Shown: positions 1,432-57,624 of the stretch, in pieces
Position numbering within the stretch: the first letter of the stretch is position 1
Layout: each line of letters opens with the position of its first letter
Assembly: GCF_964188315.1 (NCBI RefSeq)
Contig: NC_135668.1
Location: 41,664,001-41,728,000 of the forward strand
Origin: Podarcis muralis
Lineage: Eukaryota
Length of the DNA stretch: 64,000 nt
Direction of reading: 5' to 3'
Notes under the pieces: model-generated
Database searches by the model: none
Seen by the model: the letters and a program-made list of their open reading frames with translations, nothing else
What the model was told of the DNA's origin: nothing
Program-made: the position numbers and the translations under genes

Positions 1432-2937
1432 TCAGGCAGGATGTTTTCTCCTGTATCTGTGGCCACTGTACATCCTGATCATCTTGGGCGCCTGCTTCCA
1501 AGTGTTTAAGAGCTGGCCCGCCACCTTGTCCAAGGTTGGGCCATCAAAGTCGGCCAGCAGGTTGACTGGAGCGGCTTCCTTGAGGATTTTGGGCAGGCTC
1601 AGGGCTTCGGGGAGCTTGGGGTTCCCCAAGAAGAGGTGCAACAGCTCACGCCTCTGCAGGCTTTCCACGAGGAACAGGAAGAGGTTCTCCAGCCTCTCCA
1701 CCAGGAACTGGTCCTCCCAAGCTTGCAAGGGACCCCGCAGGAGGAGCCACAAAAGCGCCGTCTTGAGGACGTAGGAAGAAAGGATCCGGTTCCACTGAGA
1801 GCCCAGAGGCTGCTCCAGAGAGCGTCCCCCCAGGTCCCTCAGCCCCTTGAGGATCTGCAGGCACTTGAGGTGGCAGGAGTCAGCAGGAGCTTGCTCCTTG
1901 AAGAAGCCCAGCAGCTTCTGCTCCGGTTTGGAGACGTTGAGCGTCCAGAAGGCTCCCAGTTTCCCGGGAGCCGGCGGCTGGGCCGACGGCAAAGGGGTGA
2001 GGTAGAGCGCCTCGCCCAACGGGATGGCCGGGGTGAGGCGCACGGCCATGGAAAGGTGGCAACAGACGTAGTCGGAGCGAGGCGCGATATGCAAGGTGAG
2101 CGGGCGCCCGGGCCCGACGGCCAAGCTGACCCGGCAGCGCTCCTGGAGGCGGGAGCGCACGGCCCCCAGGCACCGCTGCACGTGGCCCTGGAACCAGCGC
2201 AGCACCAGCGCCGACGACAGGTGGCGCCCGCCGCCCTGCGCCGACGGCAGCTCCACGCACAGCGCCTCGCTCAGCGCCCCCGCCGCGCGCGGAGAGGGGC
2301 CGCCGCCCGCCTCGTCGTGCGCGCAACCGGCCGCCACTTGCAGGGCGCACACGAAGGCTCCGAGCAGGCCCGCCTCGGTCCCCCGACGGGGCTGCACCCG
2401 CAGCTCCAGGCGGGGCGGCAACCGCAGAGGCACCAGCACGTCGAAGCAGTCCGGGCTGCGCACTTTGTGCTGCTCGTAGGCGCTGCCCACTTGCACGAAG
2501 TCCCCGCGCGACGCCAGCCGGTCGGGGGCCTTGCCGGCGCGCACCAGCTCGCCCACCACCAGGCTGACGTGCGCCTTGCTGTGGCCCAGCACATGGGGCG
2601 AGAGCCGCAACTGCTGCTCGTAAAACTCCTCCAGCAAGTCGCGCCGGCGCTGCTGCCGCCGCCGTCGAAGTTCACTCCAGGCACCCTCGGGGCTCTCCGC
2701 CAGGCCGGCGGGTCTCTGGGCGCGGCCGGGCAGCCGGGCGCGATAGCGCAGCGCCAAGCAGGCCAGGAGGAGCAAGAGGAGCAGCGAGGCTTTCAGCAGC
2801 GGGGCGCCCAAGCCGGAGCCCTCGAGGGCCGCGCCGGCTTGGCTGCTGCTCAGCGCTTGCAAGACGTACAGGATCGCGGTGCAGCCGCACGTCACCAGCG
2901 GCCAGAAGACGCGCAAGTTGAGTCTGTAGGCGGTCAT
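1432..2937 (-). CDS. ITPRIPL2: Inositol 1,4,5-trisphosphate receptor-interacting protein-like 2 (single exon, 501 aa; two N-terminal hydrophobic segments plus Mab-21/cGAS-like fold)
   Basis: The ORF matches recalled human ITPRIPL2 motifs: LNLRVFWPLVT, RLSPHVLGHSKAHVS, GDFVQVGSAYEQHK..PD.FDVLVPLRLPP, LSMAVRL. It has a GCC-ATG start context, is intronless, and lies next to COQ7 as in mammals. Confidence 0.95.
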   Translation of the reverse strand: MTAYRLNLRVFWPLVTCGCTAILYVLQALSSSQAGAALEGSGLGAPLLKASLLLLLLLACLALRYRARLPGRAQRPAGLAESPEGAWSELRRRRQQRRRDLLEEFYEQQLRLSPHVLGHSKAHVSLVVGELVRAGKAPDRLASRGDFVQVGSAYEQHKVRSPDCFDVLVPLRLPPRLELRVQPRRGTEAGLLGAFVCALQVAAGCAHDEAGGGPSPRAAGALSEALCVELPSAQGGGRHLSSALVLRWFQGHVQRCLGAVRSRLQERCRVSLAVGPGRPLTLHIAPRSDYVCCHLSMAVRLTPAIPLGEALYLTPLPSAQPPAPGKLGAFWTLNVSKPEQKLLGFFKEQAPADSCHLKCLQILKGLRDLGGRSLEQPLGSQWNRILSSYVLKTALLWLLLRGPLQAWEDQFLVERLENLFLFLVESLQRRELLHLFLGNPKLPEALSLPKILKEAAPVNLLADFDGPTLDKVAGQLLNTWKQAPKMIRMYSGHRYRRKHPA

Positions 2938-3600
2938 GGCGCCTCGTTGCGCGCCGGGAAAGTTCAGTCGCGAAGCCTGCGGCGCAAAGGGTGCCTCTGA
3001 GCGCGCACAGAGGGCATGGCACTCAAGCGGTGCTGGTAGTCAAGAGAGCGCCACGGTTCTGTTTTTAAGTGAAATCTCTTCAGCCCATTGTAGCGGATCA
3101 GGAGCAAGTCAATCGATCCTTTCCAGCGATCCTTTCCCGTCCACCGGGACGCGCGATGCAGGGCCCCGGGCGCAGCAGCCGATACCCCCGCCTCCTTCCT
3201 CCCGGCAACAGCCGACAACACTTGGGCGGCCTCTTCCTCCTCCCCCGGCGCGGTAGATCTCCGATCTGCTGGTGCGCTGGGATCCAGCCGCCTCTGAAAT
3301 GGGCTGAGGAATACTTTGGAAGCTGAGCTTCCCCGTTCCTGGAATCAGATCTCGGGTTCCCCGCGTTTCCCTCTCGCTCTCGTCCTCTCCAAACTCCCTT
3401 GGCTGAAACTTTCTGCCTGGAGGACGGCTTTCCTTTGCGGTTTCCTGTCTTGTTGCCGCCGCCTCCTCCTCCTCTCCAGTTTTTACTGTCCCGGGACTAC
3501 GCGGGGGGAGCGCGCGCCAAAGTGGCCTCCTCCGACGCCTCTTCCCCTCTCCAGCCCTTCCCGCAGACCGTTACTTAAAGGGGGGAGGAATGGGGCTTTT
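1950..3600. promoter_or_regulatory. CpG island covering the ITPRIPL2 5' half, 5'UTR and promoter
   Basis: Very GC- and CpG-rich relative to its flanks; boundaries approximate. Confidence 0.75.
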
Positions 3601-7590: not shown

Positions 7591-8249
7591 GTGTGATCTC
7601 TCCATGTTACGTTAAGCAATTGCCACTTATGGCAGGAAGGGGCAAAATGAAAACAGAAGCCACGTGTTAATAAGCAGGACTGGGATGTAGTGGCAAATAA
7701 AGTCAGAGTCACGCCATACATTTAAAGCACACTTGTAGCACTGTGAGAGTCATGGTTTTCCCCAAAGACTGCTAGGAATGGAGCAACTTGTTAGAGGTCT
7801 CCTAACAATTCTCAGCATGCTTAAACTACAGTTCCCACAATTCTTTTTTGGGGGGAGGGGTTGGAATCCATGATTCCTAAAGTAGTAAGAGTGCTTTAAC
7901 TGTACAGTGTGGGTGGGACCTAACTCCAAAATAGAAAAGCATTATTTTTTTTGCCTGCCCGTCCCTCACCATATCAGAGGCCATTGGGCGGGTGTACTCG
8001 ACACATGTCCAACATGGTTTTCTTCGCTGTCACTTGACCTTTCCAAAAGCAGGGGCCTTGCACAAATAAAGCTGCTTGCGGTCACTTTAAACTCCTGGTA
8101 AAAATATTTAAATGACATTTTCTTCCCTACTTGGAATGAAGCCACACACACCCCACAACTGCAACATAATTTGCACCTGATTCCTCAGTGCTGGTTTCAA
8201 TGAGACTTAATTCCAATCAAATGTAGCCAACATGAATAGTTGACATCAT

Positions 8250-8551
8250 AAAGGTAAAGGTACCCCTGCCCGTACGAGCCAGTCTTGACAGACTCTGGGG
8301 TTGTGCGCCCATCTCACTTAAGAGGCCGGGGGCCAGCGCTGTCCGGAGACACTTCTGGGTCACGTGGCCAGCGTGACAAGCTGCATCTGGCGAGCCAGAG
8401 CCACACACGGAAACGCCGTTTACCTTCCCGCCAGTAAGTGGTCCCTATTTATCTACTTGCACCCGGGGGTGCTTTCGAACTGCTAGGTTGGCAGGCGCTG
8501 GGACCGAGCAACAGGAGCGCACCCCGCCGCGGGGATTCGAACCGCCGACCC
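8250..8551 (-). mobile_element. Sauria SINE (Squam1-type), 5'-truncated
   Basis: (ACCTTT)n tail on the minus strand; near-identical to the 27045 copy; TSD TTGACATCATA at 8240-8250 and 8557-8567. Confidence 0.9.
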
Positions 8552-12400: not shown

Positions 12401-13925
12401 CCCACCTGGGACCTTAGGGTAAAGAACAGCAGGTAATAAATTGTATAAATAAATAAATAAATAAATAAATAAAGCAAGAAGGGTTGGAGAAAAAAATACA
12501 GGTATAGGTTAGAAATAGTCACCCTTATAACTGGTCCTACTGAAGTTCTCCCTAGCACTGCCATTTGTCCTGCATAAATGCGGTTCGCCCCATATTCCCC
12601 AGCATGATCCACTCTGATTATACGGTCAATAACTGGCCTATTGATGTTTTCATAGGTCGTTCCAGTACTACAGCATCTGTAAGGTGAGTGCAAGGATGGC
12701 AAATGCCATCTTCTTCTTCCACCTGTAAAAACACACATTTTATTTATCAGAAAAAGTCAGAGCAAGAATCCTGTCACTATTCACTAACAATGGGGAGGGA
12801 GGAGGGCAGCCAGGAAGTTTTTACTACTTAGTAATAACTACAGCTGTGTTGTTCGTCATTCAATTAAATCAACTAAAAAGGCCATAAAATCCCTTTAAAT
12901 TGGAAGGGGTTTTCCAGGGAATTAAATTATTATTACTAATTATAAAAACTGCAGGTGGAAAAGGTGTTCTTAAAAGAAGCATTTCCCTCTGAGCAGCAAA
13001 AGAGAAACACTCTCAAGGTTGGTGTTGCAATGTTTCACACATAATTTTTTTTAAACTGAGTTGATTTTAAGAATGTAGTTCCTTCTATGAATTTATAGAA
13101 AAAGCATCAATTAATGAAGGAAGACTTCTTTATCCAGATGACAGCCTCCATAATAACAACAGCTTTGGATCTTTGGGAGACTCCTCTTTGTACATCCCTT
13201 CACTGGGAGAACACTCCGCTCGGTCCTGCTCCCTGCTTCTTGTTGCTTAATAAATTATTAGCATTCTTATTATTTGTAAAAATCTCTGAAAATATAGTAT
13301 TACTAATAATGAGATTTAAGTATATCCAGTGCTTTTTTTCTCTTTTAAAAAATGTTTAGGGGGAATTCTCATTTTGATTCCAGAAAATCACCATTTTATA
13401 GTTCAAATCGGGAAAAATAAATACAGTAAATGGACAAAAGTACAAAGATTCACAAAATGTTTAGGGGTATGCGTCCGTCCCCCCCCCCCCGAAAAAAAGC
13501 AGTGAGTATATCATTAATAACAATACTATTTTACTAAGTTAAAATACGAGAGTTATAACGCGTTAAGTATTATTGTTGCAGCACACTATTCTTTTAGCTG
13601 CTGCAGAGACCTGATTGCATGCTGAAGGAGTAAGATCTAAATCATGCAGCTATGGCCGAGCGTGCCTCTGAGCGTACACAGAGCGCCTTCCCCTCACCGC
13701 CACCCATTGCGACAGACGAGGGTGTGTCAAGGGGACTGAAAAGGGCAGGGCGGCTGGGGGGGGAGGACGTTTAGAGGGCGGCAAGGAGCACCGGGGAGGC
13801 ATGAAGGAGAACATCCCGGGAGAGGGGCGGCTACGTCACGGGCGCCCTCCCGCCCTACCTTCCCTGCAAAGGGACCGCCAGCACTCAGCTCGCAGCAGCT
13901 GCAGCCCCACCACCTCCGCCGCCAT
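9454..13925 (-). CDS. COQ7: 5-demethoxyubiquinone hydroxylase COQ7 (222 aa). Exons: 13925-13859, 12722-12523, 11605-11491, 11392-11253, 10720-10652, 9531-9454
   Basis: All introns are GT-AG and in phase (669 nt). The protein contains [58 protein letters not shown] and [12 protein letters not shown]. Di-iron E/ExxH ligands are intact and the N-terminus is Arg-rich like a presequence. Confidence 0.97.
9649..10151. mobile_element. CCRTA-ended (Tc2/pogo-like) non-autonomous element
   Basis: CCATATTTTTC / GAAAAATACGG ends with TA TSD; in COQ7 intron 5. Confidence 0.8.
11769..12003. mobile_element. Tc1/mariner (Tigger-like) MITE
   Basis: TIRs CAGTGGTACCTTGGTTGTCGAAC / GTTTGACAACCAAGGTACCGCTG with TA TSD; in COQ7 intron 2. 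Confidence 0.85.
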
Positions 13926-14411
13926 CCTCCCGCCCACGAGCGCCTGGCGCGGTCTGATGACGTCGCAACCGTCGGCCTGCTCAACCGCGCCCATTCTGGA
14001 CAGATGAATGTCGGCTTCGCGTTCCCAGCCATTATACAACATTGCTTTGTCCCAATAGATTTATAACAAAATAGACATACACAAAGTTGCAGCTTTCCGG
14101 GTTCCTTTCTAACTTTTATTCTGCCTGCCGCCGAGCGGGGAAAGGAAATGACAGCCCATTACAGACATTTCGCTTTATTCACTCCTGTTCCTACTCACGC
14201 ACACACGCACATACCTACCTACTTACGCGCGCGCGGCGTGGGATCTCAATATTTCGTATCTCTGTATTCCCCTCTACTTTGGTTCCCGCCCCCGCTCGCC
14301 TTTCCCTTTCCCCAATTGGAGGAAAGCGACCGCCAATTCCTTGGGAGGCGCGTCCTCCTGAGGTTGTCATGGCGACCACAGAACGCCTTCCTGGCGCTGA
14401 GGGCTGAAGCG
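13926..14411. promoter_or_regulatory. Bidirectional CpG-rich promoter between COQ7 (-) and the unknown gene (+)
   Basis: Divergent ATGs at 13925 and 14412. Motifs: CCAAT at 14052, 14312 (CCAATTGG) and 14333, GC box 14285-14292, ETS-like TTCCGG 14095-14100, CRE-like TGACGTC 13958-13964. Confidence 0.7.
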
Positions 14412-14556
14412 ATGGCGGCGCCGCTGGGGGGCTCCGTGTCCCCCCGGGGACTGGCCCGCTCGGTGGCCCACAGGCTGTAAGGAGTGTGTATGTGTGCGCG
14501 CGCGCTTCAATGGCTGGGAAACGGGGGCAGAAATATTATTCGTAATTATCTGTATA

Positions 14557-14614
<58 letters not shown>

Positions 14615-17600
14615 CGCGCGCGCGCGCGCGTGCTTTAATTCTATTAATCTTTAATTGCTTGTTAATGGTTCTCCCCCCCATGTTTTTCACTGCAGTTGTT
14701 TTATCGGTAAGCCTCCTTGAGTCCCTGTCAGGGAAAAAAGGCAGAATATATATGCATTATTGTTATTATATTAATAATATATACCCATGACACCAGCAAC
14801 ATACATAATTATACAATTATTTGTAATCTGCCTTGTGGGTTTTTCTTTAGTGTCAAGCAGTATATAAATTTTAATTAATAAATACAAAAGGACTTTGACA
14901 TGACCGTAACAGTACAGAGCACACAACAGCTTAATATGTTCGTTTATTATTACACTTATGTGCCACCTTTTCTACAAAGAGCTCAAGAGGTAGCATACAT
15001 TCTTATTTCTTTCATTTTTCCTCACAGTGACCCTGTGAGGTAGATTAGGCTGACAGGCAGCGACTGGTCCAAAGTCACACAGTGAGCTTCATGGCCAAAT
15101 GGGGATTTGAACCCTGGTCTCTCAGCGCTCTAACCACTGTGCCACACTGTGTCTCACCATCACTCCCATGATGGGAGTGAAAACCAACAAGCACACTAAA
15201 TACATCCACTTAGCAGTGACCATCAAGGACTGATAAATGTTAATTTTAATTAAGATCTAGCAACCCTAGTTATAAAGCCACACAGCTCAAGACTGAACAG
15301 ACATTTGGCTTGCAGTATACAGCTGTCTGATCTTATAAAATATGTTCAGGGCAATGGCCCCATCCTCATTCCCTACTACCTAGACAGGTACTTCACAGCA
15401 CAGTCATATGTGAATGGAACTTATGCCTAGGTAAGTATGTGTAGGATTGCTGCCTTGGAGATCTGCCCTTTCCATCCTGCTTGGCAATGCTTCAACCGTC
15501 ATCTCAGGCCAATAAGTGATCTTTAAATGCTAAATTTGTACTGCAAAATTAGACAGGGAAGTAGAAGCATCTTGACACTCCCGAACTCTTCATGATAGCT
15601 TTGTGATTTTGAATGTTATGATGGCAATTGAGCAGCATAGCCAGATGGCAATTATGCTTTTTTTAAAATAAGGAAAAAATGTGTTTTTCCTCATTTAGAA
15701 AGTATTATGTTGATGTACAAAGAAAAGAAGATTCCTTCGATTCATCTGGAGTCATCCATGATGAGACTGAAAGTTTGCGTTTGGTAAATATTTGTTAACG
15801 TATGTGTGGGTTTCAAAATCACATCTGTTGCACACAATGAAGGCTGGTACATTAGGGAAAGGGGGGCACTGGCCCACTAACCTCAGCCAGCTCCCCATCT
15901 TCCTATTTTCTCACTTGCAACTAGGCTTGGGGGTGGCAATCCAAGTATGAAGGGAGTTTAAGTCCAGCAACATCTGGAGGGTACTATTCTAGCACTAATT
16001 AGCCTACCAGAAACTGTTCATTAGTAGATCTACCTTCTGCCTACTCCTGTTGTAACTTATCATGTGGTGGCTGATTGTTAGCCTCTCCCCATTTGGTCTT
16101 TGCTGGGTTGTTATGCTGCATCTGGCCTTGATGGTGATTATCATGGTAGCAAATTTGACCCTCGTGCCTTGCCATCCTAGCCATGTCCATTCACAGCAGC
16201 ACAATGTGCCTGATCTTATTTATACCCTGGCCATCTGGCTGGGTTGCCCCCGCCACTCTATCCTATATGGATGTAGCCCCACTGAGTTCAATAAGATTTA
16301 TATCCAAACGTGTGTTTAGGATTGCAGCCTAAATTTATAGATTTTGAGTGGTATTTGCAATACCAGTGAGATGCATTGGATTTTTTTCTTTTTTATGATT
16401 GAGTATTTTAACATTTGCATATAAAAAAGTGGGTTTTTAATGTTGAATATGCACACACAAAAACTAGTTTTGTGTACTGTAGATTTGAGCCTATTAGCTT
16501 TCTTGTAGAGTTTCTCAAGATTCCCCAATCTAAATAGTTTTCTAAGAATCTTCATTTTTACTGGTCTTGCAGCATCCAGCATTTTTGATGAAGCAGAAGG
16601 AAAACCGGGAGCTGGAACATAATTTTGCTGAGATTAAATTGGAAGCATCCTTACGTGCCTTTATGGGGAGCACCGAAGAATGCAACAGAAAATTGCAGAA
16701 AAGCCCAGAAAAGCAAAAGGATTTGGAAAAGCTTATTAAAAAGATGGCACAAGTAATATTTAGAATCACTCTTCTCTATTTCTTTATGCATACCACCTTT
16801 TTAATACATATCATTTCATGTTTGGGGAATCATCTGCCGTGTATGTTGGTAGAGCCATCATATGGGAAATAGTGTGTATCCAGCCAGTGGGTGTGTTCAC
16901 ACTTAATAAGTTCAAGGCACTGCTTTTGGTGTATAACGCCCTATACAGCTTAGGACCAATATACAGTACCTGAAAGATCATCTCTCTCTTTATATACCCA
17001 GTTGGTCACTGTGTTCTGCAGGAGAGGCCCTCTGCAGATACCATTTTTTCACAAGTTCTGTTCCGCACAATATAGGAATCCAACCTTCAGTGCCATGGTA
17101 CCTCCCCTTTTGAATCCCCCCTGTTCAGTATTAGACAGGAGCTGTCTTTGTTGTCACCTACTGAAGACCTTCCTCTTCCCAGAGAACTTTTCCAGCCATT
17201 ATCTATATTGGAATTGTTTTTAAAATGCTTTCATTGTTTTGTCACTTGTTGTTTGCTGCCATGGGCTCCTTTGGGATTTAAATTTAATAAATAATAACGC
17301 CAAACTGCAGTTTGACATTACACATCTCAGGATTGCGTGCCTCCTCTGCTTCCTTCCTCCCACTGAACAAGGCAGTTCCCTACCTGTATGGTGGAGCAGC
17401 TGAGTGGTAGGCTAAGACAGGGGAGATCTCGATTCAAATCTCCACTCATTCCTGAAGCTTACTTGGGTGATCTTGAGCCAATTGCTCTCTCTCTGCTTAA
17501 CCACCTTCATAGGGTTGTTGCAAGGATGAAATGGGAGGGGGTGGGACTGTGTATGCCATCTTGAGCTCCTTGGAAGAAAGGGGTGGGGTGGGGGAGCATG

Positions 17601-20600
17601 GCTGTCTGTTGTGATCAAGGCCATTACTTCTCCTTCCTCTGACTTATCTCCAGGGCATTTTGTGAAAATAAAACAGTGGCTACCAAGAGACAGCTGCTGA
17701 GAAGGCTTAAAAACAAAAACAGAGAGTGATAAAACAAATACGACTATAACTACAAATATGACATACAAGTTAACAGTGAAATAAATTGACAGTAGCAGAA
17801 CTCATCCTCTGCTGCCTACAAATTTTGCTCCCCAGGACTCGGCTCATTTGCTGCAGGCCTTTGCATAGTAGCAAAATCGGGATTCGTTATGGAAAGAGAT
17901 ACAGTGCAACTGGGTGGTTTTCTAGGCTCCCAAAGCATCTAGCGTTTTGACTTGCATTAGACAAGTTAGTAATGTGGTCTGCATCTTTATTTGTAGGATT
18001 ACATACCTGATAGAACAAACGAGGGCAAAGCAAAAAGTACAAAAAGGTAAAACCTATTGCTGTCTAATTGTTGCCTAATGATCAGCAGAAGCTCTTGCTG
18101 CCCTGCTGATTGCTAGCATGCTATAATGCAAATGTACACCCAAGAATAATCTCAAATTATTTTCTCCCTGAAATTATAGTAGTTGAGTGTATGAAAGAAA
18201 ACCTATTGCATTAACACACTCAACCGCCCCACTGCAGCTGCCACACATGTGCCGTGTCTGTGAGCTACTGGCAGTGGATTTGGGATTCACACAACCACAG
18301 CTGCTGGTTGAACCAAACTGAGATGCTCTGGATGCAGCCCCTGCTTGTGCAAAATGGCAGCTGGATCCAATGGTTTTGTCATTTTGAGATGGCAGTGTAT
18401 AATTGTGTCCAGTCTCTCCTATTGAAAGCTGTTGGTTTTGCAATCAGGCCCAGCGCCAGCACCTGGCATGCTTGGGTAAATACTGGGAGTCCCCAACACT
18501 AATGCCAGGATTTTTAATTTAATGGGGGCCGAGATTTAGGATTCAGTATTGAAGAGAGAAGCACAGGCTTAGGTGTTGTAGAAGTAGTCACTCTCATTAC
18601 CAACCGATTCCTCTGAATGTAGCAATGCTATATTGGGGGGCCGCAGGCATTTGGGGGAAATAGGCAGGCACTGTAGACCTGCCTGGCCCAGTACTGTGGC
18701 TAGCTGGCCACTTGCCCACCCATAATGCCAGCTGGGGACAGCACGGAGCAGAGTTATGAGCTGCATACACAGATTCTACAGCCTTGCTACCTTTATTACG
18801 TTGCCCCCAACATGCACACATCAGGGGAAAGATAATCATATTTAAGCCAGTGGCGTCAGGGAAGGGGTGTAGTTCAGTGATAGAGCATCTGATTTGCATG
18901 CAGAAGGTATCCTGGGTTCACTTCCAGCATCTCCAGGTATGGCTGGGAGAGATCCATGCCAGAAACCCTGGAAAGCTGCTGCCAGTCAGTGTAGACAGTA
19001 CTCAGATAGAGGGTCCAATGGTCTGATTCAGCGTAAGGCAGATTCTTATGTCCCTGTCAGGGAGTTTGCACATGTGAAGGCTCATAGCTCCATTCAGCAC
19101 CTCTCCAGAGCCACCACTTGTAAGCAAGTGAGCAGCCAGCAGCTCCAGCAGTGAGTTTGTGTATACGATCCCCAGTTCTGTTCAGCAGTGCCACCATCAT
19201 CTTAGCCAGGCACGTACCCCCATCAGCCCAGGGCCCCCAAAACGTGGAGCTGGGCCTGCTTGTTGTAAATATCGGCATTTTTCTTGGCATTAACTAACTC
19301 TACCTTTGTTTTTCATCAGGCAGGAAAATCTGCAGAGCACTCCCTCCAGACTGCATATAACTACTACTCCATGTATGGCACCAGAAGTACGGAGACTCAT
19401 TTCATCGGCTTCCAAGCTAATCGTGGCTGCTGTGGGTATCAAGTCACCCTCTTTCACACATTTACAAAATTGTTAAGCATCTCCCCTAAAATCTATCACT
19501 GTTCCTTTATGTACAGGAAGAAGTCAGCCGTCTTTTTTGCATTCTAACAAACACCTCCCAGCAATAATTCTGCTACTGTTTTACTTCGAGAATTGAGAGT
19601 AGACAGTTTTTGTGAACACATCTCTCTGTCAAACTCAATGAATAAAAAACATATTTCTTAAGAATTTATGTTGCTTCTCTCTCTCTCCAGACTTCTGAAG
19701 CCTCTCCAAGAGAAATGGGAACAACCCAAGAAAGGTTTTCAACCTCAAAGAGAAAAGAAGCAAAAAACATTCAATGTTTGGACAGTGGCAGCAAGACAGG
19801 TCTTTCCTCCACACATTCTCACAAAGATGAAGCAAGAAGGTATGGCAGCTTGGTGGCATGCCAGTTGGCATCTTGAAATAAACCTTTGCCCCAAATTCCA
19901 TACAATTAAACCCAGGGATGGAAGGATTTGTCCATTTCTACCAGTTCCTCATTTTTCCAAACTAAAATTTAGTTATTCACGGCGTGCAGCAATTTGCTAA
20001 TTTATTTTATTTTTAAATCTTGAAAACTCCCCAGCATTCTAGTGCAAATTTATCCTAAAAAACATATTTTACATGACTAATGTGCAGTTTTGCAAGCAAT
20101 TTCCCCTAATATAGTGCATGTTTTTAATCACTAATACCTCTACACTGGTACCTCAGGTTAAGTACTTAATTCATTCCGGAGGTCTGTACTTAACCTGAAA
20201 CTCTTTCTTAACCTGAAGCACCACTTTAGCTAATGGGGACTCCCGCTGCCACCGCGCTGCCGGAGCACAATTTCTGTTCTCATCCTGAAGCAAAGTTCTT
20301 AACCTGAAGCACTATTTCTGGGTTAGCGGAGTCTGTAACCTGAAGCGTATGCAACCTGAAGCGTATGTAACCCGAGGTACCACTGTATTTTTATCCACAT
20401 TTTGGTAAACAGTGGTTAGCTGGAGGCACCCCATAATAGGGTTAAGTGCGGATTTTAAAGGATGGCTGTGTTTTGGTTTGCATATCGTTCTTTAAACGCA
20501 CACTGAATCAAATGTCTCCTCCATCCCTAGACTAACCATTTCACATGCCCGATGATGTTTCCTATCCTCCTGAGATTCCACCATCTTCTTTCTTTCTGTT

Positions 20601-23600
20601 TGCTTTTTGTCTTTCAGAAAAGTATTCCCATCTCCTCCTTTCCCTTGCAGCTGATGGATCAGTTTTCTCTGGGCGCCTAATTGCCCTGGCATCTCCTCCT
20701 TTTAGCAGTGGACGAGTCATCTCTGGGATTGTTAGGCTTTTTCATTGAGGTGACATGATGAAGGGATCCTACAGTTTTATTAGTGTTGATATTTGCTCAT
20801 TTCTGTGGGGTTAAGGTAAAGGTACCCCTGACCATTAGGTCCAGTCGCGGACGACTCTGGGGTTGCACGCTCATCTTGCTTTATAGGCCGAGGGAGCCGG
20901 CGTTTGTCCTAAGACAGCTTCCAGGTCATGTGGCCAGCATGACTAAGCCGCTTCTGGCGAACCAGAGCAGTGCACAGAAACACCATTTACCTTTCCGCCA
21001 GAGCGGTACCTACTTATCTACTTGCACTTTGACTTGCTTTCGAACTGCTAGGTGGGCAGCAGCTGGGACCAAGCAACGGGAGCTCACCCCGTCACGGGGA
21101 TTCGAACTGCCGACCTTCTGATCGGCAAGCCCTGCACTCTGTGGTTTAGATCACAGTGCCACCCACGTCCCTAACCCACCTGTGAGGTTAGAATGCTAGA
21201 TTTTCCTTTGACTCTGATGAAGATCTTGTGTCAACTTTGTGGAACACAAGCATCCCCCTTCACACCTAAAGTTGACCTTCCAGCACTGCTGGGATGAGTG
21301 GGGGCACTGTGGCATTATCTTGTGTGTGAGAGAGAGGAGGAATAATGCAAGAATGTGGGGTGCCCTTGACACAAGTCCATTGGCTGCCTTTGTGTGTTGG
21401 GGAAGGGGGAATGATTGGTTGGGCTATGGTGGTGTTTCTAAAGATACCAAGGATATATCTGATACTTTTAAGCATCTTTTCCATATATTCTGGTTATGAG
21501 TTTCTCCCCCTCCTGAGCTGAATATCATTGGATATGCAGCCATTACACCAGAATAGCAGTGGCTTATTTCTGGCCTCAGTGTAATGGGAATATAGGATTG
21601 CTTCTTTTTGTTGGGATGCACCTTTGATCTTCTAAATTATTTCCTGGCTTCTCAAGAAGTCCTTCTCTAAAAATGTGAATGGGATTTTACAATGTTTTCA
21701 CTTTCTGGTGTCTTTCAGGGTTAAACGAAACCGTGAAGGGAAAAAATGGAAAGAGGCAAAGAGATCATCTGAAACTTCAAGCACTTCCAGCAACTCCAAG
21801 AAATCTAACAGGCCTTTTTTGAAAATTCCCCCTATACCAAGCAATATAAGCTCAGATGATAAGAGGTCCGTAGCTCTATATTTGCAAACTGGACAAAACG
21901 AAGCATTTAGGAAAGGTATACTTAGAAGCAGAACCTCCTCAGCAATGTCTGAACACCAAGATAAGCAGTCAAATGCTCGATGGAAGAACTTTTCACCCAC
22001 TCAGCAATTTGCAGAGAATTCTGCTGGACCTTCCAATAAACCACTTAAAATCAAAAGGGAAGAGTCATCTCTCAGACCCACTGAAACAGTCCCAAAAGTT
22101 AAGAGCTCTCCAGCAAGCAAGTTTTGGAATACAAGACCGATCCAGAGTTCCAGGAGTAATCGAGAAGAAAAAAGACGCAAAACAAAATATTCTGCAAAAT
22201 CGACCGCTGAAGTGATAAGTATCCAGAGTTTAATGTCCATAGAAAAGACTCAGAAGCAATATGATCCCACGCCGATTTCTGGGTGGTTTCTTAAAGGCCA
22301 AGGCAATCAAATACACGGCCAAGGTGATCAGAAAAGCAAGCTTGTGGAAAACTCTGAAAGTGACTGGCCTCAAAATGAGCAAAAGTGGTGTGATTTAGTA
22401 TCAAGGAACCCTGAATGCCGCCAGGTTCATTTCCAAACACTTAAAGAGGAGTCCATTCCTGGCGCCGCTGCTTGGGAACACCCTTCTTTGGAAAGTTGTA
22501 GCCGGCAAAACCTAAGAAGCCCTGAAAATGCAACTCAGTCAGTTGCCACCAACAAAGTATCCACTGGGATTGTGGCAGGTCTTCAAGAGGATCAGAACAA
22601 TGACCATATCCCCGTGGTCCAGCGTGAATCGCATTTTCTGTATCAAGTGTGCCAGGAAATGGATGAAGATGTACCACCAAGTTTAACTCTGAATAGGTCT
22701 ATGACTACAGATGGAAATGTCAGAAACCAAAGTACACACCATCTTTTAGACCAGCTCTTCTCTTCAGAGGAAGAAGGGGACAGCTATGCCATTGAGGACC
22801 CTGCCAATACCACACAGATGCAGGATGTTACTTTAGGAGAGTCCCAGGATAAGCAAATGATGTCTCTCCCATCAGTGACACCAGGTGCTTGCAGGTGTTC
22901 AGAACTACTGAGTTACTGTGTGTGTCAAGCTCCTGAAAAGCAACGTCTGGGACCCCCTGTTAAAACCGCAACTATTTTAGAAAGACTGGAAAGTGAGCAG
23001 TCGGAAGAAGAATTCACCATTTCATCTGCCTCTAGCAGCCTGAGTGCCAGATCATTAACTGGCCTATGTGAACAGATGGTAAGGCATTTGAAGTTGTGCT
23101 TTAATGACTTCTACTTGGCTTCTGGAATGAGGTTTCCCATTACTTTTCAGCAAAATTGGAAGCTGCCTAATGAGGCCAAACCCATCTTTTAAAATTGGGC
23201 AGATCGGTTATGATTTATTGGGCAGCTCAAGAGGTGCTGAGCCAATCTGCCATTTGTCTCTTACTAGTGCTGCAGCTCATTCTCTATCTTCATGTTCAAG
23301 TAGGTTTCGGGGAAAGGGCTTTCTGATGCATCCTCACCTGTTCTGAGGCGTTTACCTGGTAGTGGTGGGTAGCCACACCACAGTCATTGGCACTAGGCAG
23401 ATCAGATCCACCATATAAATGTCCCTCAGTGAACTAGAGTGATGCTGCCTCAGGGGTATTTGATGGGTCTTGCTCAGGATGGGCAGAAGCAGAAGACACA
23501 GACAAATTCATTTCCACCATATGTTACTTGTCAAAGTGGACATCTGGGGTATGGCTCTCTTCATATTACATTGTACCATCTCAGCAGCCCCACATCATTA

Positions 23601-26399
23601 TGAATAATACTTTTGTATCATCCTGAAGTGCTTTCCAGTGATTACTGGCTCCAGGACAGAGGTGGGAAACCTGTGACCCTCAAGTTATCAATAGACTACA
23701 ACTCCCATCGTCCTTGACAATTGGTTATGCTGGCTGGGGCTGATGGGAGTTGTAGTCCAACAACAACTGGACGGCATGATGGTGGCAGCCCCTGGTCTAT
23801 GACATAAGAGCTGGACAGCATAAGCAGTAGATCTAATTATGTTGATCTATGGCAGACACTGATGTAAACAGCTGCCTCCTGCAGTTTTATAGAGTTTAAA
23901 TAGATGGTGATTACTGTTCCCATTCAATCTTCTCTCTCCAGAGCTAAATATATGTTTGTCAACCTATTTATATGCACTAGAACAGTGCATCCCGTTTATT
24001 GTGCAAATTCATCCAAGGTGCCTGTTTTTAAAGATTTTACCTCTGCTACAACATACGTACTTCATGTGAAAGAGACATACTTTTGCTGAACTGTGTGCAC
24101 ATATTTACACACACCTGGCTCTAGCTGTTAGATCTTGGGGGCTGTGTAAAATACAAAATAGTTCCAGAGAGCCTGAAGTCTTCTTAACCCTGGGCCAGAA
24201 GATCTCCTCCATAGGAACTGCCCTGACATCTGAATTAGGGATAATCTAACATTTCCAACAGAAATCTATGTTATCTCCCTATTACCTAAATATTACCCAC
24301 ATGTGCTTTTCATCCTAGAGCAGAAACAGCAAGGAGGAAAACAACACGGACCCTAGCATGGAACTTCTTGTTCAGAAACTTCGGAAGGTGATGCCAGAAG
24401 AGACCACCACATGTCAAGATAGGTTCCTTCAAGAAGGCAAAAAGCCAAGGTATGAAAACTTGAATTCTGTTGACGAATGACAATTTTGAATTTTTAAAAA
24501 TACGATACTCTAGTCTAGATGTTTCCAGGTGTGCTGTAACATCACGGTTTCATAGTTTGGCCAGAGAGATTATGCCTAGCAATAACCACCACCACTCTCC
24601 CCCCCCCCACTTACATTCAACATATGGATGGCTAATGAGTTAGCAGCCCTTTCTTGCCATTAACATCTGGCCATTCAGGCAGGGTAAAAGCAAAGGAAGT
24701 AGTAGAGACTGAATCTGCCATGGATGCTTCAGCTGAGATTTCTGCACTGCAGCGGGGTGGACTGGATGACCCTTGGGGTCCCTTCCAACTCTTAAGTTTC
24801 TATGATTCGATGAATCCTGTACATGTGAGAAAGCACTTCATCCCCGATGCTCTTAAGGTTGTCTAAAAGCTCACCCTCTTGTTCACATTTGTGGAGTATA
24901 TCCACATTATTCAAGCGTGCAGAAAAGCATTATGTGGCTGCTTCCCACTTACAGATCCCCTCCCCGCACATGTCTGCCAAAGCTCAGCTTACAGGATTCT
25001 GGAAAGCATGCTTGGACTGGCTTCTGGTGAATGCACTGGTTCAAGAGTAATGTTTGAATAACATATGGTCTCATATGGTGGTTGGTTGTTTGTATGTGTG
25101 TTATTTGGTTGAGAGTGGAGTACCTTTGAGGCTTTTAAATACTTGGGATCTATGGCTAACTTTAGGTATGCAGGGCAGTACCAAACAAAACCCACCACTT
25201 TTTTTTTTCCCTGGGCAGTGATCAGATGGGAAGAGGAAGCATTCAGAAGGTCTTTTTTAAAGTGTTCCTTGCTGGGAAGGGTAGTAAGGTTACTTTTGTT
25301 GTGTCTCTCACTGCTGCAAATTAAGCTTAATGCTCAGTTTCGCTTCCTTAATCTCCACATACCCTAACATTATGTTTCAGTTTTACTTCCTTGTTTGGGT
25401 GAAGAGTCTACAGAGCAAAGCAAGGGGAGTGGCTTTGGTCGGGTTTGAATTTCCTTTAGTTTAGTGCAAGGATGCTCCACCTTGTTTCACTCAATAAGTT
25501 TTGCCATCTGAGCTACATCATAGCCTAGCCCATGGGTAGGCAAACTAAGGCCCAGGGGCCGAATCCAGCCCAATCGCCTTCTAAATCTGGCCCACGAATG
25601 GTTCGGGAATGTTTTTACATGAGTAGAATGTATCCTTTTATTTAAATGCATCTCTGGGTTATTTGTGGGGCCTGACTGGTGTTTTTACATGAGCAGAATG
25701 TGTGCTTTTATTTAAAATGCATCTCTGGGTTATTTGTGGGGCATAGGAATTCGTTCTTTTTTCTTTTTCCTTTTCAAAATATAGTCCGGCCTCCCACAAG
25801 GTCTGAGGGACAGTGGAGCGGCCCCCTGCTGAAAAAGTTTGCTGACCCATGGCCTAGCCAGTCATTTTCTCCCTAAGTCTATTTTGTAATCCTTGCTTTT
25901 TCTCCCTTCAGTTCTCCCTCTGAGACGAGAAGAGACTTGGATCATGGAACCGAGGGTACCTGCGTCAATCAAATAGTTTATTTTTCTCACTTCCCCCAGT
26001 CGTTTTAGTGCAGAGCCCCAACAAGAGGACCACGTTAATTGTTGCCTCATCTCTTTCCTCGTCATAAAAAAAAGGCATGGTAGCCATTGCTCTTTTTTAC
26101 CACTCTGCTTGTGATTGTTTAATGCATTATTTGCTATGTTCATGGAAATCAAATCAGTAGCATTAAGATCTCAAATGCATTTTTCTCCCAATGCCTCTCC
26201 AATTTCAGTGACTGTCTGCCCAGGCTGATGCTTGCGTCCGGTATGAATAGAGTGCCGTTTTATTTTTGTAATCTTGACAGCTGATAAAATCACCCACCTG
26301 AAACAAAAAAGCTGTTTCCACTGTGGGAATCTTCTTAAAAGATTGAAAGATGAACTGACCTCTAAACGAAATCTGCCCATAATGCCCAGAGACTCTTGA
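14412..26399 (+). CDS. Uncharacterised multi-exon protein (about 677 aa). Exons: 14412-14476, 15699-15783, 16573-16752, 17997-18046, 21719-23078, 24319-24449, 25912-25955, 26281-26399
   Basis: All seven introns are GT-AG with matching phases (2,0,0,2,0,2,1), totalling 2034 nt without an internal stop. It includes a 1360-nt open exon (ORF 21675-23192). Start context is GCG-ATG-G in the CpG island. No homologue recognised; the small exons are less certain than the large one. Confidence 0.72.
14551..14633. repeat. Compound microsatellite (TG)n(TA)n(TG)n(CG)8
   Basis: 83 nt of uninterrupted pyrimidine/purine alternation. Confidence 0.95.
14970..15150 (-). mobile_element. Older Squam3/MIR-like SINE
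   Basis: Diverged similarity to the 32666 element (GGTTCAAATCCCC, GTGACTTTGGACCAGTC, CTCACAGGGT). Related decayed copies at about 17388-17580 (+) and 52600-52710 (-). Confidence 0.6.
16905..17290 (+). mobile_element. Decayed L2-type 3' fragment
   Basis: Diverged resemblance to the 4931 element. Other L2-like pieces at about 12390-12480, 40570-40800, 43740-43860 and 61100-61240. Confidence 0.5.
18859..19056 (+). mobile_element. tRNA-derived SINE (Squam2-like)
   Basis: GGGGTGTAGTTCAGTGATAGAGC tRNA-like head; 3' end ...AATGGTCTGATTCAGCGTAAGGCAG..TATGT. Related fragments at about 10155-10200 and 52990-53095 (-). Confidence 0.6.
20143..20385. mobile_element. Tigger-like MITE
   Basis: TIRs CACTGGTACCTCAGGTTA / TAACCCGAGGTACCACTG with TA TSD; same family as 54137-54362. 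Confidence 0.88.
20813..21171 (-). mobile_element. Sauria SINE, full length, different subfamily
   Basis: tRNA-like head GGGACGTGGGTGGC and ACCTTT tail; imperfect TSD CTGTGGGGTTA / CTGTGAGGTTA. Confidence 0.88.
25531..25851. mobile_element. hAT non-autonomous element
   Basis: TIR CATGGGTAGGCAAACT / AGTTTGCTGACCCATG, 8-bp TSD GCCTAGCC, internal tandem duplication. Confidence 0.88.
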
Positions 26400-27044
26400 A
26401 ATCGACGGGACTGAGCTCTGATTTTTTAAGACAGTTTAATCCCCAGTGTTGAAAGATTTTGAAATTGTCATTTTAAGAAGAGCCCTGCTGGATGAGAACA
26501 AAGGTCTGTATAGTCCCAGTAGCCAACAGATGCCTCTCACAAAAACTGCAAGAAGGACATGAGCAAAACAGCCCTCTCACAACCATTGTTTTCCAACAAC
26601 TTGTACTCAGTGGCATGTTGCCTCTGAACCGGGAGGTTGCAGATTGCCACTACATCTAGAAACCACTGACAGCATTACCCTTTATGAATCTCCCTCCCTT
26701 TTTAAAAACTATCTAAATGGATGACTCTCAACAGTAGCAAATCTGATAGTTCAACAATGCACTGTGTGATGTTCTTCTTTTCAGACCAGTGGTTCTCAAG
26801 GGGTGTGGCAGGAAAGGATGGCAAGTATTGCGGGAAGATTCAAGGGCAAGCAAAGAAACATTTAAACATTTCAGAGTAGCATAGTTGAAAACTTATTGTT
26901 TTGGAGGGGGGGGATATCTATCCATGTCTCTCTTCGAGAGCATTGGCTATTCTTCTACAGTTCTTTACGACGTATTGTTGTGAACAAGGTCTTCCGAATA
27001 TTAAAGATCAGAAAAGAGAAAGGGTTCTTTGTGTTGAGGAGATG

Positions 27045-27404
27045 GTAAGGTAAAGGTAAAGGTACCCCTGCCCATACGGGCCAGTCTTGACAGACTCTGG
27101 GGTTGTGCGCCCATCTCACTCAAGAGGCCGGGGGCCAGCGCTGTCCGGAGACACTTCCGGGTCACGTGGCCAGCGTGACAAAGCTGCATCTGGCGAGCCA
27201 GCGCAGCACACGGAACGCCGTTTACCTTCCCGCTGGTAAGCGGTCCCTATTTATCTACTTGCACCTGAAGGTGCTTTCGAACTGCTAGGTTGGCAGGCGC
27301 TGGGACCGAGCAGCGGGAGCGCACCCCGCCGCGGGGATTCGAACCGCCGACCTTTCGATCGGCAAGCCCTAGGCGCTGAGGCTTTTACCCACAGCGCCAC
27401 CCGC
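27045..27404 (-). mobile_element. Sauria SINE, young copy
   Basis: (ACCTTT)n tail, CpGs intact, perfect 12-bp TSD GTTGAGGAGATG (27033-27044, 27405-27416). Confidence 0.93.
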
Positions 27405-47480: not shown

Positions 47481-48415
47481 GTTGTTGTTGTTTAGTCGTT
47501 TAGTCGTGTCCGACTCTTCGTGACCCCATGGACCAGAGCACGCCAGGCACTTCTGTCTTCCACTGCCTCCCGCAGTTTGGTCAAACTCATGCTGGTAGCT
47601 TCAAAGACACTATCCAACCATCTCGTCCTCTGTCACCCCCTTCTCCTTGTGCCCTCCATCTTTCCCAACATCAGGGTCTTTTCCAGGAAGTCTTCTCTTC
47701 TCATGAGGTGGTCAAAGTATTGGAGCCTCAGCTTCACGATCTGTCCTTCCAGTGAGCACTCAGGGCTGATTTCCTTAAGAATGGATCGGTTTGATCTTCT
47801 TGCAGTCCATGGGACTCTCAAGAGTCTCCTCCAGCACCATAATTCAAAAGCATCAATTTTTTGGCGATCAGCCTTCTTTATGGTCCAGCTCTCACTTCCA
47901 TACATCACTACTGGGAAAACCATAGCTTTTACTATACGGACCTTTGTTGGTAAGGTGATGTCTCTACTTTTTAAGATGCTGTCTAGGTTTGTCATTGCTT
48001 TCCTTCCAAGAAGCAGGCGTCTCTTAATTTCGTGGCTGCTGTCACCATCTGCAGTGATCATGGAGCCCAAGAAAGTGAAATCTCTCGCTGCCTCCATTTC
48101 TTCCCCTTCTATTTGCCAGGAGGTGATGGGCCCAGTGGCCATGATCTTCGTTTTTTTGATGTTGAGCTTCAGACCATATTTTGCGCTCTCCTCTTTCACC
48201 TTCAATAAAAGGTTATTTAATTCCTCCTCACTTTCTGCCATCAAGGTTGTGTCATCTGCATATCTGAGGTTGTTGATATTTCTTCCAGCAATCTTAATTC
48301 CGGCTAGGGATTCATCCAGCCCAGCCTTTCGCATGATGAATTCTGCATATAAGTTAAATAACCAGGGAGACAAAATACAACCTTGTCGTACTCCTACAAC
48401 CTTGTCGTACAGGAG
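47481..48415 (-). mobile_element. RTE-BovB LINE, 5'-truncated, with intact RT C-terminal ORF
   Basis: ORF 47633-48373 has GVRQGC, NINNLRYADDTTLMAESEEEL and FELWCWRRLLRVPWTARRSN; 3' tail (CGACTAAA)(CAA)n. Confidence 0.93.
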
Positions 48416-48611
48416 AGCAATCCTGAAGCCATTTTGACTCTTCCCAAGTAGACCTCAAATATTTCTCTGCAAGGAGGAAGGAAAATGGGAAAAGCTTTCC
48501 AATTGTCCTTGGGCTGTAGGGGCTTACACCTCCCTGCAAATAAAGTCTGGCAAAGTATCTGTTAAGCTGAGCAAACTATCAATATGTGTAGGAGATTCAG
48601 GAAATAAAGTC

Positions 48612-50450
48612 TTTGGCGATCACTCGTAGTCAAGTAAGATTGTCTTCCATGAAGTGAGTCCATAAGTGGCTTTGGAGAACAATTCTCAATCCATGCATTC
48701 TTTCACAGTGGGGACGTAGGTTTCCGGGTGGGAGTTGATCACGGTGAGGATTTGCGAAATGTGCCTTCCTCTTAGCACGTTTCTCCCTTGCGTCCTGAGT
48801 TTGAGTGTCTTCAAAGTCCATGACACCTTTGGTAAAGGCTGGTCTCCAATTGGAGCTCTCACAGGCCAGTGTTTACTAATTATCAGTGTTTATACTACAT
48901 TTTTAGAGATTTGCCTTGAGACAGTCTTTAAACCTCTTGTGTTGACCACCAGCATTACGCTTTCCATTTTAAAGTTTGGAATAGAGTAGTTGCTTTGGAA
49001 GACGATAAGCAGGCATCCAAACAACATGACCAGTCCAGTGAAGTTGATGTTGAAGAATTATTGCTTTGACACTGGTGATCTTTGTTTCTTCCAGAACACT
49101 GGCATTAGTTCACCTGTCTTCCCAAGTGATGTGTAATTTTTTTCAGAGACACCATTGATGGAATCTTTTGAGGAGTTGGAGATAGTGGTCCATGTTTCAC
49201 AAGCGTACAGTAAGGTTGGTAGTACAATAGCTTTGTAAACAAGCATGTTGGTTTCCCTGTGAATGTCCCAGTCCACAAACACTCTGTACTTCAATCGGGA
49301 GAAAGCTACACTCGCAGAAATTGGGCGATACTGGATTTTGGCATCAATGTCGGCCCTTGTGGAAAGCCCAGGTAGGAGAAGTGATCAACACTTTGCAACG
49401 TTACACCATTGAATTGGATTTGTGGCACTGCAGAGGGGTTGTTTTGTGCTTGTTGGTGCAACACTTTGGTTTGGAAGTTGAGTGATAGGCCAAGCTTTTC
49501 ATAAGCTTTTGCGAAGATATTTAGGATGGTTTGGAGGTCAGCCTCTGAGTGTGCACACACTATGTTGTCATCAGCATACTGAAGCTCTATGATGGAAGTT
49601 ACGGTAACCTTACTCTTTGCTTTCAGCCTATTCAGGGTAAAGAGCTTTCCATGTGTTCGATATGATTTCTACTCCAGTGGGGAGTTTCCCTTCGACAAAG
49701 TGTAGGATCATGGCAATGAAAATAATGAATAGAGTTGGAGCGATAACACAACCCTGTTTAACACCTGATCCCACTGTGAATGGTCCACTTTGAGAGTCAT
49801 TTTTATCTGTGATTGTTGATGTCATATTATCATGGAGGAGCCAAAGAGTGTTCACAAATTTATCTGGGCAGCCAGATTTCAGAAGGACAGTCTGCAGGGC
49901 ATTACGATTTACAGTGTTGAAGGCCTTAGTCAGGTCAATAAATGGCATATACAGGGGTTGGTTTTGCTCTCTGCATTTTTCTTGAAGCTATCGAGCAATG
50001 AAAATCATGTCCACTGACCCCCCCAAAGGTCGAAAACCATTCTGGGATTCAGGAAGGGTAGTCTTGGATATTGTTAGGAGGCAGTTTGCTAAGATCTTTG
50101 CAATAATTTTGCCGGCCACAGCTAATAAAGAGATGCCTTGATGGTTTCCGCAATCAGTTCTCTTACCTATTCTAAAGAGATGGATAATTTTGGCTAAAGT
50201 CTGCTGGGATCTCCTCTTTCTCCCAGATTTTTCGATACACTTGTGAAGTTGTTGTGTAAGTTCAATTCCACACACTTTGAAGACTTTGGCATGTATTCCA
50301 TCAGGTCCACCGGCTTTGTTGTTTTTTCATTTGGTTAAAAGCTGTACACAGCTCTCCCAGATTTACTGCAAGCTCATCTCTAGTATGTTTTTGCGGAATT
50401 TGTGAGAGGACCTCAGCAGCTACGGGGGAGTTGCTGTTAAGCAAAGACGT
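48612..50450 (-). mobile_element. Older RTE-clade LINE, frameshifted
   Basis: Fragments FIDLTKAFNTVNR, GVKQGCVIAPTLF, QGISLLAVAGKI and PTLLYACETW are spread across frames. Confidence 0.85.
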
Positions 50451-56934: not shown

Positions 56935-57225
56935 TTAAAGCGGTATTGTACCACTTTAAATAGTCATTGCTTCTCCCAAATAATCCTAAAAACTGTAGTT
57001 TGTTGAGGGTGATGAAAGTTGTCAGGAGCTACAATTCCCAGAACGGTTTAACAGTCTATCCCTCTGCCAAGGGAATTCTGGGAATTGTAGCTCTGGGTGG
57101 GGAATAGGAGTCTCCTAACAACTCTCAGCACCCTTAACAAATTGCAGTTCCCAGGATTATTTGGGGGAACCTATGACTGTTTAAAGTGGAGTGATACTGC
57201 TTTAAATGTATAGTGCAGATGAGGC
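56935..57225. repeat. Abundant roughly 150-290 bp inverted-end repeat family (MITE-like)
   Basis: Arms ATTTAAAGC...AACTGTAGTTT / AGTTCCCAGGATT...CTTTAAAT. Partial copies at about 7715-7920, 10880-11100, 42590-42740, 57915-58065, 58650-58800 and 59500-59675. Confidence 0.65.
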
Positions 57226-57241
57226 CTAATGTAAGAGTATA

Positions 57242-57624
57242 GGGACGCGGCTGGCGCTGTGGTCTAAACCACTGAGCCTCTTGGGCTTGCTGATTGGAAG
57301 GTCGGCGATTCGAATCCCCATGAGGGGGTGAACTCCCGTTGCTCTGTCCCAGCTCCTGCCAACCTAGCAGTTTGAAAGCACGCCAGTGCAAGGAGATAAA
57401 TAGGTACTGCTGCGGCAGGAAGGTAAATGTTGTTTACGTGCGCTCTGGCACTCGTCACGGTCATCCGTACACCAGTAGCGGTTTAGTCATGCTGGCCACA
57501 TGACCCGGAAAGCTGTCTATGGACAAACGTCAGCTCCCTCGGCCTGAAAGCGAGATGAGCACCGCAACCCTATAGTCGCTTTTGACTGGACTTAACCGTC
57601 CAGGCGTCTTTTACCTTTTACTTT
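57242..57624 (+). mobile_element. Sauria SINE, full length
   Basis: GGGACGCGG head, B-box-like GATTCGAATCC, ACCTTTT tail, TSD TAATGTAAGAG on both sides. Confidence 0.9.

Follow-up and report, generated by a model that had tools for sequence, protein, structure and literature searches.

A gene beside COQ7 in the lizard Podarcis muralis, best described as a domain-depleted orthologue of a metazoan N-helix/PLAT/ankyrin family

The closest known relatives of the gene considered here, beyond its reptile orthologues, are uncharacterised metazoan proteins such as Xenopus laevis LOC108701546, Scyliorhinus canicula LOC119978605 and Nematostella vectensis A7RYU3 (LOC5515317), which combine N-terminal helices, a PLAT domain and ankyrin repeats (N-helix/PLAT/ankyrin). 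The gene lies in a 64,000-nt stretch of the Podarcis muralis genome (contig NC_135668.1, positions 41,664,001 to 41,728,000), hereafter the window, in which all coordinates are counted. Its product shares with these family proteins the N-terminal motifs RLKYYxDVxRxExxFD, LKHxF and ExxRLxSSASKLIVA. The gene shares with the vertebrate members a position beside COQ7 and a TMC gene, and reptiles have in common with frog members a large disordered exon that finishes in an acidic-serine motif. In contrast to these relatives, the lizard protein is without a PLAT domain and without functional ankyrin repeats, and it breaks off within a relic of repeat 1. A domain-depleted orthologue of the metazoan N-helix/PLAT/ankyrin family is the description that fits the lizard gene best. 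With PLAT/LH2 proteins of the LOXHD1 type, the only thing in common is the PLAT domain that ancestral members of the family carry and that the lizard protein lacks; one Pelobates orthologue has been automatically named 'lipoxygenase homology domain-containing 1-like', a label that rests on this one domain.

Reading of the splice junctions, together with alignment of the closest database protein to the window, gives a plus-strand gene of nine coding exons (14412-26008) with a coding sequence of 2229 nt, a product of 742 aa and GT-AG boundaries at every intron (Table 1). Direct orthologues with an identical exon structure are LOC117056409 of Lacerta agilis, LOC118093146 of Zootoca vivipara and a hypothetical protein of Podarcis lilfordi, whose exon 7 protein is 88-93% identical to that of the window gene, with a pairwise dN of 0.026-0.045 over the whole coding sequence and no substantive difference. 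When the nine exons of the window were mapped onto these three loci, the joined translation equalled the database protein exactly in each case (3/3). The gene is real and very probably functional, with nine coding exons and a product of 742 aa, and by its position it is the orthologue of an ancient metazoan gene that is uncharacterised.

Beyond the lacertids, a query with exon 7 matched proteins of Rhineura and Anolis in addition to those of P. lilfordi (93% identity), Lacerta and Zootoca, all of them entered as hypothetical or 'uncharacterized protein LOC...', and a profile built from five such proteins added geckos, snakes, Pogona, Hemicordylus and many turtles. An earlier reading of this DNA from its letters alone (the sequence-only reading) had called the gene unrecognised, a description that does not hold because NCBI already lists 'uncharacterized protein LOC...' entries for many squamates and turtles; the gene thus has an annotation, but neither a name nor any study devoted to it. 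Full-length orthologues span squamates and turtles at 30-47% identity, with a C-terminal ending, YF(S/C)HFP, common to both groups and an acidic-serine motif kept between turtles and lizards. Separately, one annotated isoform of Anolis sagrei (P0006) shows an alignment gap at the equivalent of exon 3, so that some transcripts may do without the central helices.

The deeper ancestry of the gene was traced with an N-terminal profile of about 175 aa, aligned from eight members and searched against 1.84 billion representative proteins. There were 80 matches, 51 of them at E<=1e-10. The 30 named clusters comprise vertebrates (frogs, a salamander, Xenopus laevis, skates, catshark, gar, bowfin and sturgeon) and invertebrates (a crinoid, a hemichordate, gastropods, bivalves, annelids, a nemertean, Nematostella and two sponges). 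Invertebrate matches at E<=1e-10 include Owenia, Capitella, Nematostella and Glandiceps, with the sponges matching more weakly, and neither fly nor nematode was seen among the profile matches. None of the named relatives carries a functional name or has been characterised. The unnamed matches all group near named taxa, and one apparent intermediate, from an assembly that we take by its accession to be a sea turtle, occupies the same position between COQ7 and TMC. A second search that started from the turtle N-terminus brought up turtles, squamates, frogs and a shark, and nothing else. The motifs RLKYYxDVxRxExxFD and ExxRLxSSASKLIVA are both present in the lizard protein, and the N-terminal motifs as a whole are nearly invariant from sponge through lizard. 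Across a 50-sequence alignment, Y25, E32, F35 and R152 are invariant, and L22, R30, D36, F68, E149, L153 and A157 are at least 90% conserved.

This signature region has no counterpart in the resources searched. Pfam gave no match for the exon pieces or for the full-length lizard and turtle proteins, the N-terminal region having no Pfam entry, and the N-terminal profile found only chance matches (E >= 0.08) among PDB sequences. In the Protein Atlas, which compares language-model features, the best score of the N-terminal region was 0.77, below a meaningful level, to the unrelated CENPJ, C12orf40 and HJURP, while the catshark protein fell only into generic Ank and PLAT clusters. The literature, queried for the combination of domains, for six LOC identifiers and for a divergent transcript of COQ7, gave nothing relevant. 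KNOP1, a lysine-rich nucleolar protein encoded at human 16p12, was dropped as a candidate, as the family found here explains the gene.

As the sequence-only reading had placed it, the gene lies between COQ7 and a TMC gene, both on the minus strand, and the order COQ7(-)/gene(+)/TMC(-) is seen in the window, in Lacerta, in Zootoca, in a turtle and in the catshark, where the gene in this position encodes PLAT and Ank. In Xenopus, where only the TMC side was seen, the gene (+) is likewise followed by TMC (-). In human and mouse, by the account of the sequence-only reading, no protein-coding gene lies between COQ7 and TMC7. The Nematostella locus has no COQ7 or TMC neighbour, its family member being flanked by a gene for an AMP-binding enzyme and an HLH/HMG-box gene, so the linkage is seen only in vertebrates. 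Judged from these gene orders, the gene has remained adjacent to COQ7 since before the split between sharks and tetrapods.

In most family members outside reptiles and ray-finned fishes, a PLAT/LH2 domain follows the conserved N-terminal helical region of about 170 aa, and ankyrin repeats make up the C-terminal part. Among the proteins tested, those of frog, annelid and hemichordate origin and that of the sponge Oscarella carry PLAT (PF01477) and C-terminal ankyrin repeats according to Pfam, and that of the sponge Ephydatia has no Pfam match. Hidden Markov models (HMMs) trained on the PLAT and ankyrin regions of the family itself detect the two domains in sharks, in nearly every amphibian protein and in the majority of invertebrate proteins, the exceptions being Ephydatia and, with PLAT only, a Rana isoform and two mollusc-like proteins. 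With the same models, the proteins of squamates, turtles, gar, bowfin and sturgeon show neither domain. For gar (P0050), bowfin (P0053) and sturgeon (P0033), this may reflect a second, independent loss or incomplete gene models. The lizard gene has the family's N-terminal region and its synteny, and has neither PLAT (PF01477) nor C-terminal ankyrin; the two or more recognisable 33-residue repeats that define an ankyrin-repeat protein are not found in its product.

The loss is also apparent in the genomic DNA. A scan with tblastn and the family HMMs detected three PLAT exons and three ankyrin exons at the Xenopus locus, which served as positive control, and found no relics of either domain on the window's plus strand from 14 to 32 kb and no PLAT or ankyrin exons at a turtle locus. 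Since the catshark and Xenopus carry a PLAT-ankyrin gene in the corresponding position, the lizard gene is a positional orthologue that has lost both domains. By the Xenopus exon map, lizard exon 7 corresponds to the large disordered exon of frogs. Each of the two closes with an acidic-serine motif, which reads EEEFTISSASSSLS in reptiles and EEYLFSDTSLxLSLS in frogs. Exon 8 is collinear with the amphibian helix that lies just ahead of the ankyrin repeats, though the match is weak. Between turtle residues 176-330 and the Xenopus PLAT region there is no similarity. At the C-terminus, turtle FHFSSTDEEGRANMDHA and Xenopus FLLSSTDKEGRTLLHHA match at 10/17 positions (E 2e-4 for that single comparison), a clearer result than the profile-profile alignment gave, and on this alignment the last reptile exon is read as the relic of ankyrin repeat 1, followed by a stop codon. 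The common YF(S/C)HFP ending suggests that the truncation is older than the split between turtles and squamates, and the domain loss may date to their common ancestor.

Selection on the gene was estimated as the ratio of nonsynonymous to synonymous change (dN/dS, Nei-Gojobori) between pairs of four lacertids, namely the window, P. lilfordi, Lacerta and Zootoca. Pairwise values are 0.51-0.59 for the whole coding sequence, 0.16-0.33 for residues 1-165, 0.66-0.86 for residues 166-668 and 0.19-0.42 for residues 669-742. Pooled pN/pS, summed over two independent pairs (the window with P. lilfordi, Lacerta with Zootoca) and assessed by one-sided Fisher tests, is 0.57 overall (p 6e-4), 0.26 at residues 1-165 (p 9e-4), 0.71 at residues 166-627 (p 0.057) and 0.45 at residues 628-742. 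This pattern indicates purifying selection on the gene, which acts strongly at the N-terminus and weakly in the middle. Insertions and deletions among the four lacertids comprise whole codons in every case. The comparison among lizards that the sequence-only reading had proposed as a check on its gene thus gave a ratio below 1 overall and no frameshifts within the 742-aa coding sequence.

These values also bear on a rival explanation, in which the locus is a relic in decay. The COQ7 promoter would then give rise to a divergent and essentially non-coding transcript, with an open reading frame (ORF) that survives in gene predictions and no longer yields a useful protein. Such decay would fit the absence of both globular domains, the pairwise ratios in the large exon and the seemingly outright loss of the gene in mammals and archosaurs. 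However, the 742-codon ORF and its GT-AG introns are intact in all four lacertids, full-length orthologues extend across squamates and turtles, and the conservation of both the acidic-serine motif and the C-terminal ending reaches from turtles to lizards. Together with the low N-terminal pN/pS and motifs that have hardly changed since sponges, this makes a relic improbable.

The sequence-only reading had assembled eight exons into a 677-aa product ending at 26399. Six of its exons were right (exons 1-4, 7 and 8 of Table 1), and the peptides that it quoted were all found on the plus strand at the places given; exons 5 and 6 had been missed and the 3' end was wrong, as was the length of the product. 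Its phases still matched because exons 5 and 6 amount to 261 nt together and their omission leaves the frame intact. A scripted enumeration found 12 distinct GT-AG paths that yield a stop-free 677-aa product finishing at 26399; small phase-matched exons are therefore cheap, and that part of the model can be put down to chance. Lacerta agilis and Zootoca vivipara each carry an in-frame stop in the segment leading to 26399, where Lacerta also has a frameshifting 1-nt insertion, and the CxxC motif that had been placed at the C-terminus falls in this non-coding stretch, near 26281-26399. It could still be argued that the 677-aa product is a genuine alternative isoform, given that exons 5 and 6 can be skipped in frame, that a GT-AG path from 25912-25955 to 26281-26399 exists and that annotated orthologues have several isoforms. 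Against this stand the disrupted terminal segment in other lacertids, the 11 other arbitrary paths of the same length, the loss with exon 5 of one of the family's best-conserved motifs, and the fact that none of the retrieved lacertid proteins ends in this way, so that we consider such an isoform very unlikely. A squamate or reptile innovation without older ancestry, which the sequence-only reading had offered and which the lack of a Pfam match and of a mammalian counterpart in protein databases might seem to favour, is refuted by the family profile matches, which reach cnidarians and, more weakly, sponges, and by the positional orthologues in catshark and Xenopus.

Structure prediction covered the N-terminal region and the full-length protein. 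AlphaFold2 modelling of the N-terminal region (50 sequences) gave confident helices at residues 11-33, 68-112 and 148-166, with a predicted local distance difference test score (pLDDT) of 69.5 and a predicted template modelling score (pTM) of 0.21. In the full-length model (47 sequences) the same helices were kept, and 551/742 residues, including nearly all of 166-742, had pLDDT <50. These models bear out the helical N-terminus and the long, disordered S/K/E-rich exon described from sequence. The tail, some 575 aa long, is basic and rich in serine, is predicted to be disordered and carries the conserved acidic-serine motif; the protein as a whole has an isoelectric point of 8.8, 13% serine and an acidic C-terminal part. 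A bipartite pattern resembling a nuclear localisation signal at residues 213-229 is the only feature that speaks for the nuclear scaffold proposed earlier. In a possible mechanism, the N-terminal helices would bind a conserved partner, and the tail would serve as a flexible, probably phosphorylated linker or hub. Unlike the ancestral multi-domain protein, the reptile protein, having lost the lipid-binding and ankyrin modules, might then act as a soluble adaptor or regulator.

Taking these observations further, we tentatively suggest, as a possibility rather than an expectation, that the N-terminal helical region is an undescribed interaction module of pre-bilaterian age that works alone, and that selection preserved it beyond the loss of PLAT and ankyrin in sauropsids and the probably independent loss of both in gar, bowfin and sturgeon; the gene itself seems to have gone from mammals, archosaurs and teleosts. 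The earlier proposal that the gene was retained in reptiles and is missing in mammals is supported within protein databases, as two very large protein searches gave zero mammalian matches. Several points weigh against the main reading, that of a functional, domain-depleted orthologue. The N-terminal region is not compact alone, as its pTM indicates, so a binding module is something that we infer. The middle of about 460 residues is near-neutral among lacertids. By hhalign, the reptile C-terminus and the ankyrin region of amphibians match weakly (E 0.033, probability 1.5%). In addition, the lack of a match in mammals, birds, crocodilians and teleosts in either search is an absence from protein sets, not from genomes.

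The family, from sponge to lizard, has no characterised member, and no Pfam model covers its signature region. The reptile reduction amounts to a natural deletion experiment, which points to the N-terminal region as the indispensable part, and Xenopus laevis LOC108701546 offers a tractable full-length member for functional work. If a stand-alone N-terminal module exists, a widespread animal gene has been missed by study because Xenopus is the only standard model that has it. For the lizard genome the value is modest, as an annotation of the gene existed before and the new knowledge is confined to its ancestry and domain history.

Table 1. Coding exons of the gene and other features of the window.
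Feature	Positions	Strand	Remarks
Coding exon 1	14412-14476	+	ATG, 65 nt, donor GT
Coding exon 2	15699-15783	+	carries KYYVDVQRKEDSFD motif, kept from sponge to lizard
Coding exon 3	16573-16752	+	central helices of the N-terminal region
Coding exon 4	17997-18046	+	50 nt
Coding exon 5	19320-19431	+	absent from earlier model; carries EVRRLISSASKLIVAA, among the best-conserved motifs of the family
Coding exon 6	19691-19839	+	absent from earlier model
Coding exon 7	21719-23078	+	1360 nt (1 base + 453 codons); S/K/E/Q-rich, predicted disordered; terminates in acidic-serine motif LESEQSEEEFTISSASSSLSARSL
Coding exon 8	24319-24449	+	short helix SMELLVQKLRKVM
Coding exon 9	25912-26008	+	relic of ankyrin repeat 1, product ending …DHGTEGTCVNQIVYFSHFPQSF; stop TAG
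Last 'exon' of earlier model	26281-26399	+	non-coding (3' untranslated region or intergenic)
CpG-rich region between the start codons of COQ7 (-) and the gene (+)	13600-14600		CpG observed/expected 0.9-1.1 in most 200-nt blocks of 13800-14600; 0.61 at 13600
COQ7, start of coding sequence	~13925	-	head-to-head with the gene, 486 bp from its ATG (14412)
TMC gene, 3' end	~29720	-	tail-to-tail with the gene
Single 535-aa ORF	1435-3039	-	65% GC block; Mab-21 and Mab-21_C Pfam matches
Reverse-transcriptase (RVT_1) fragments	47636-48454, 49631-49987	-	remains of long interspersed nuclear elements
(TG)n/(TA)n microsatellite	~14500-14640		intron 1 of the gene; reads as CVCV/YIYI translations
Near-identical translated ORFs	8220-8444, 20783-21121, 27004-27246, 57137-57482		putative dispersed repeat

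The CpG-rich region is probably a bidirectional promoter for COQ7 and the gene, an activity suggested by its base composition and by the arrangement of the two start codons. On the TMC side, LOXHD1 and ankyrin are said to work with TMC channels; a functional link of the gene to TMC7 was considered and dropped for lack of evidence. The single ORF with Mab-21 matches is probably ITPRIPL2, a gene that presumably lies downstream of COQ7 in human as well. The reverse-transcriptase fragments probably lie in introns of TMC7. The near-identical ORFs have the look of a dispersed repeat resembling a short interspersed nuclear element, one copy of which sits in intron 6 of the gene.

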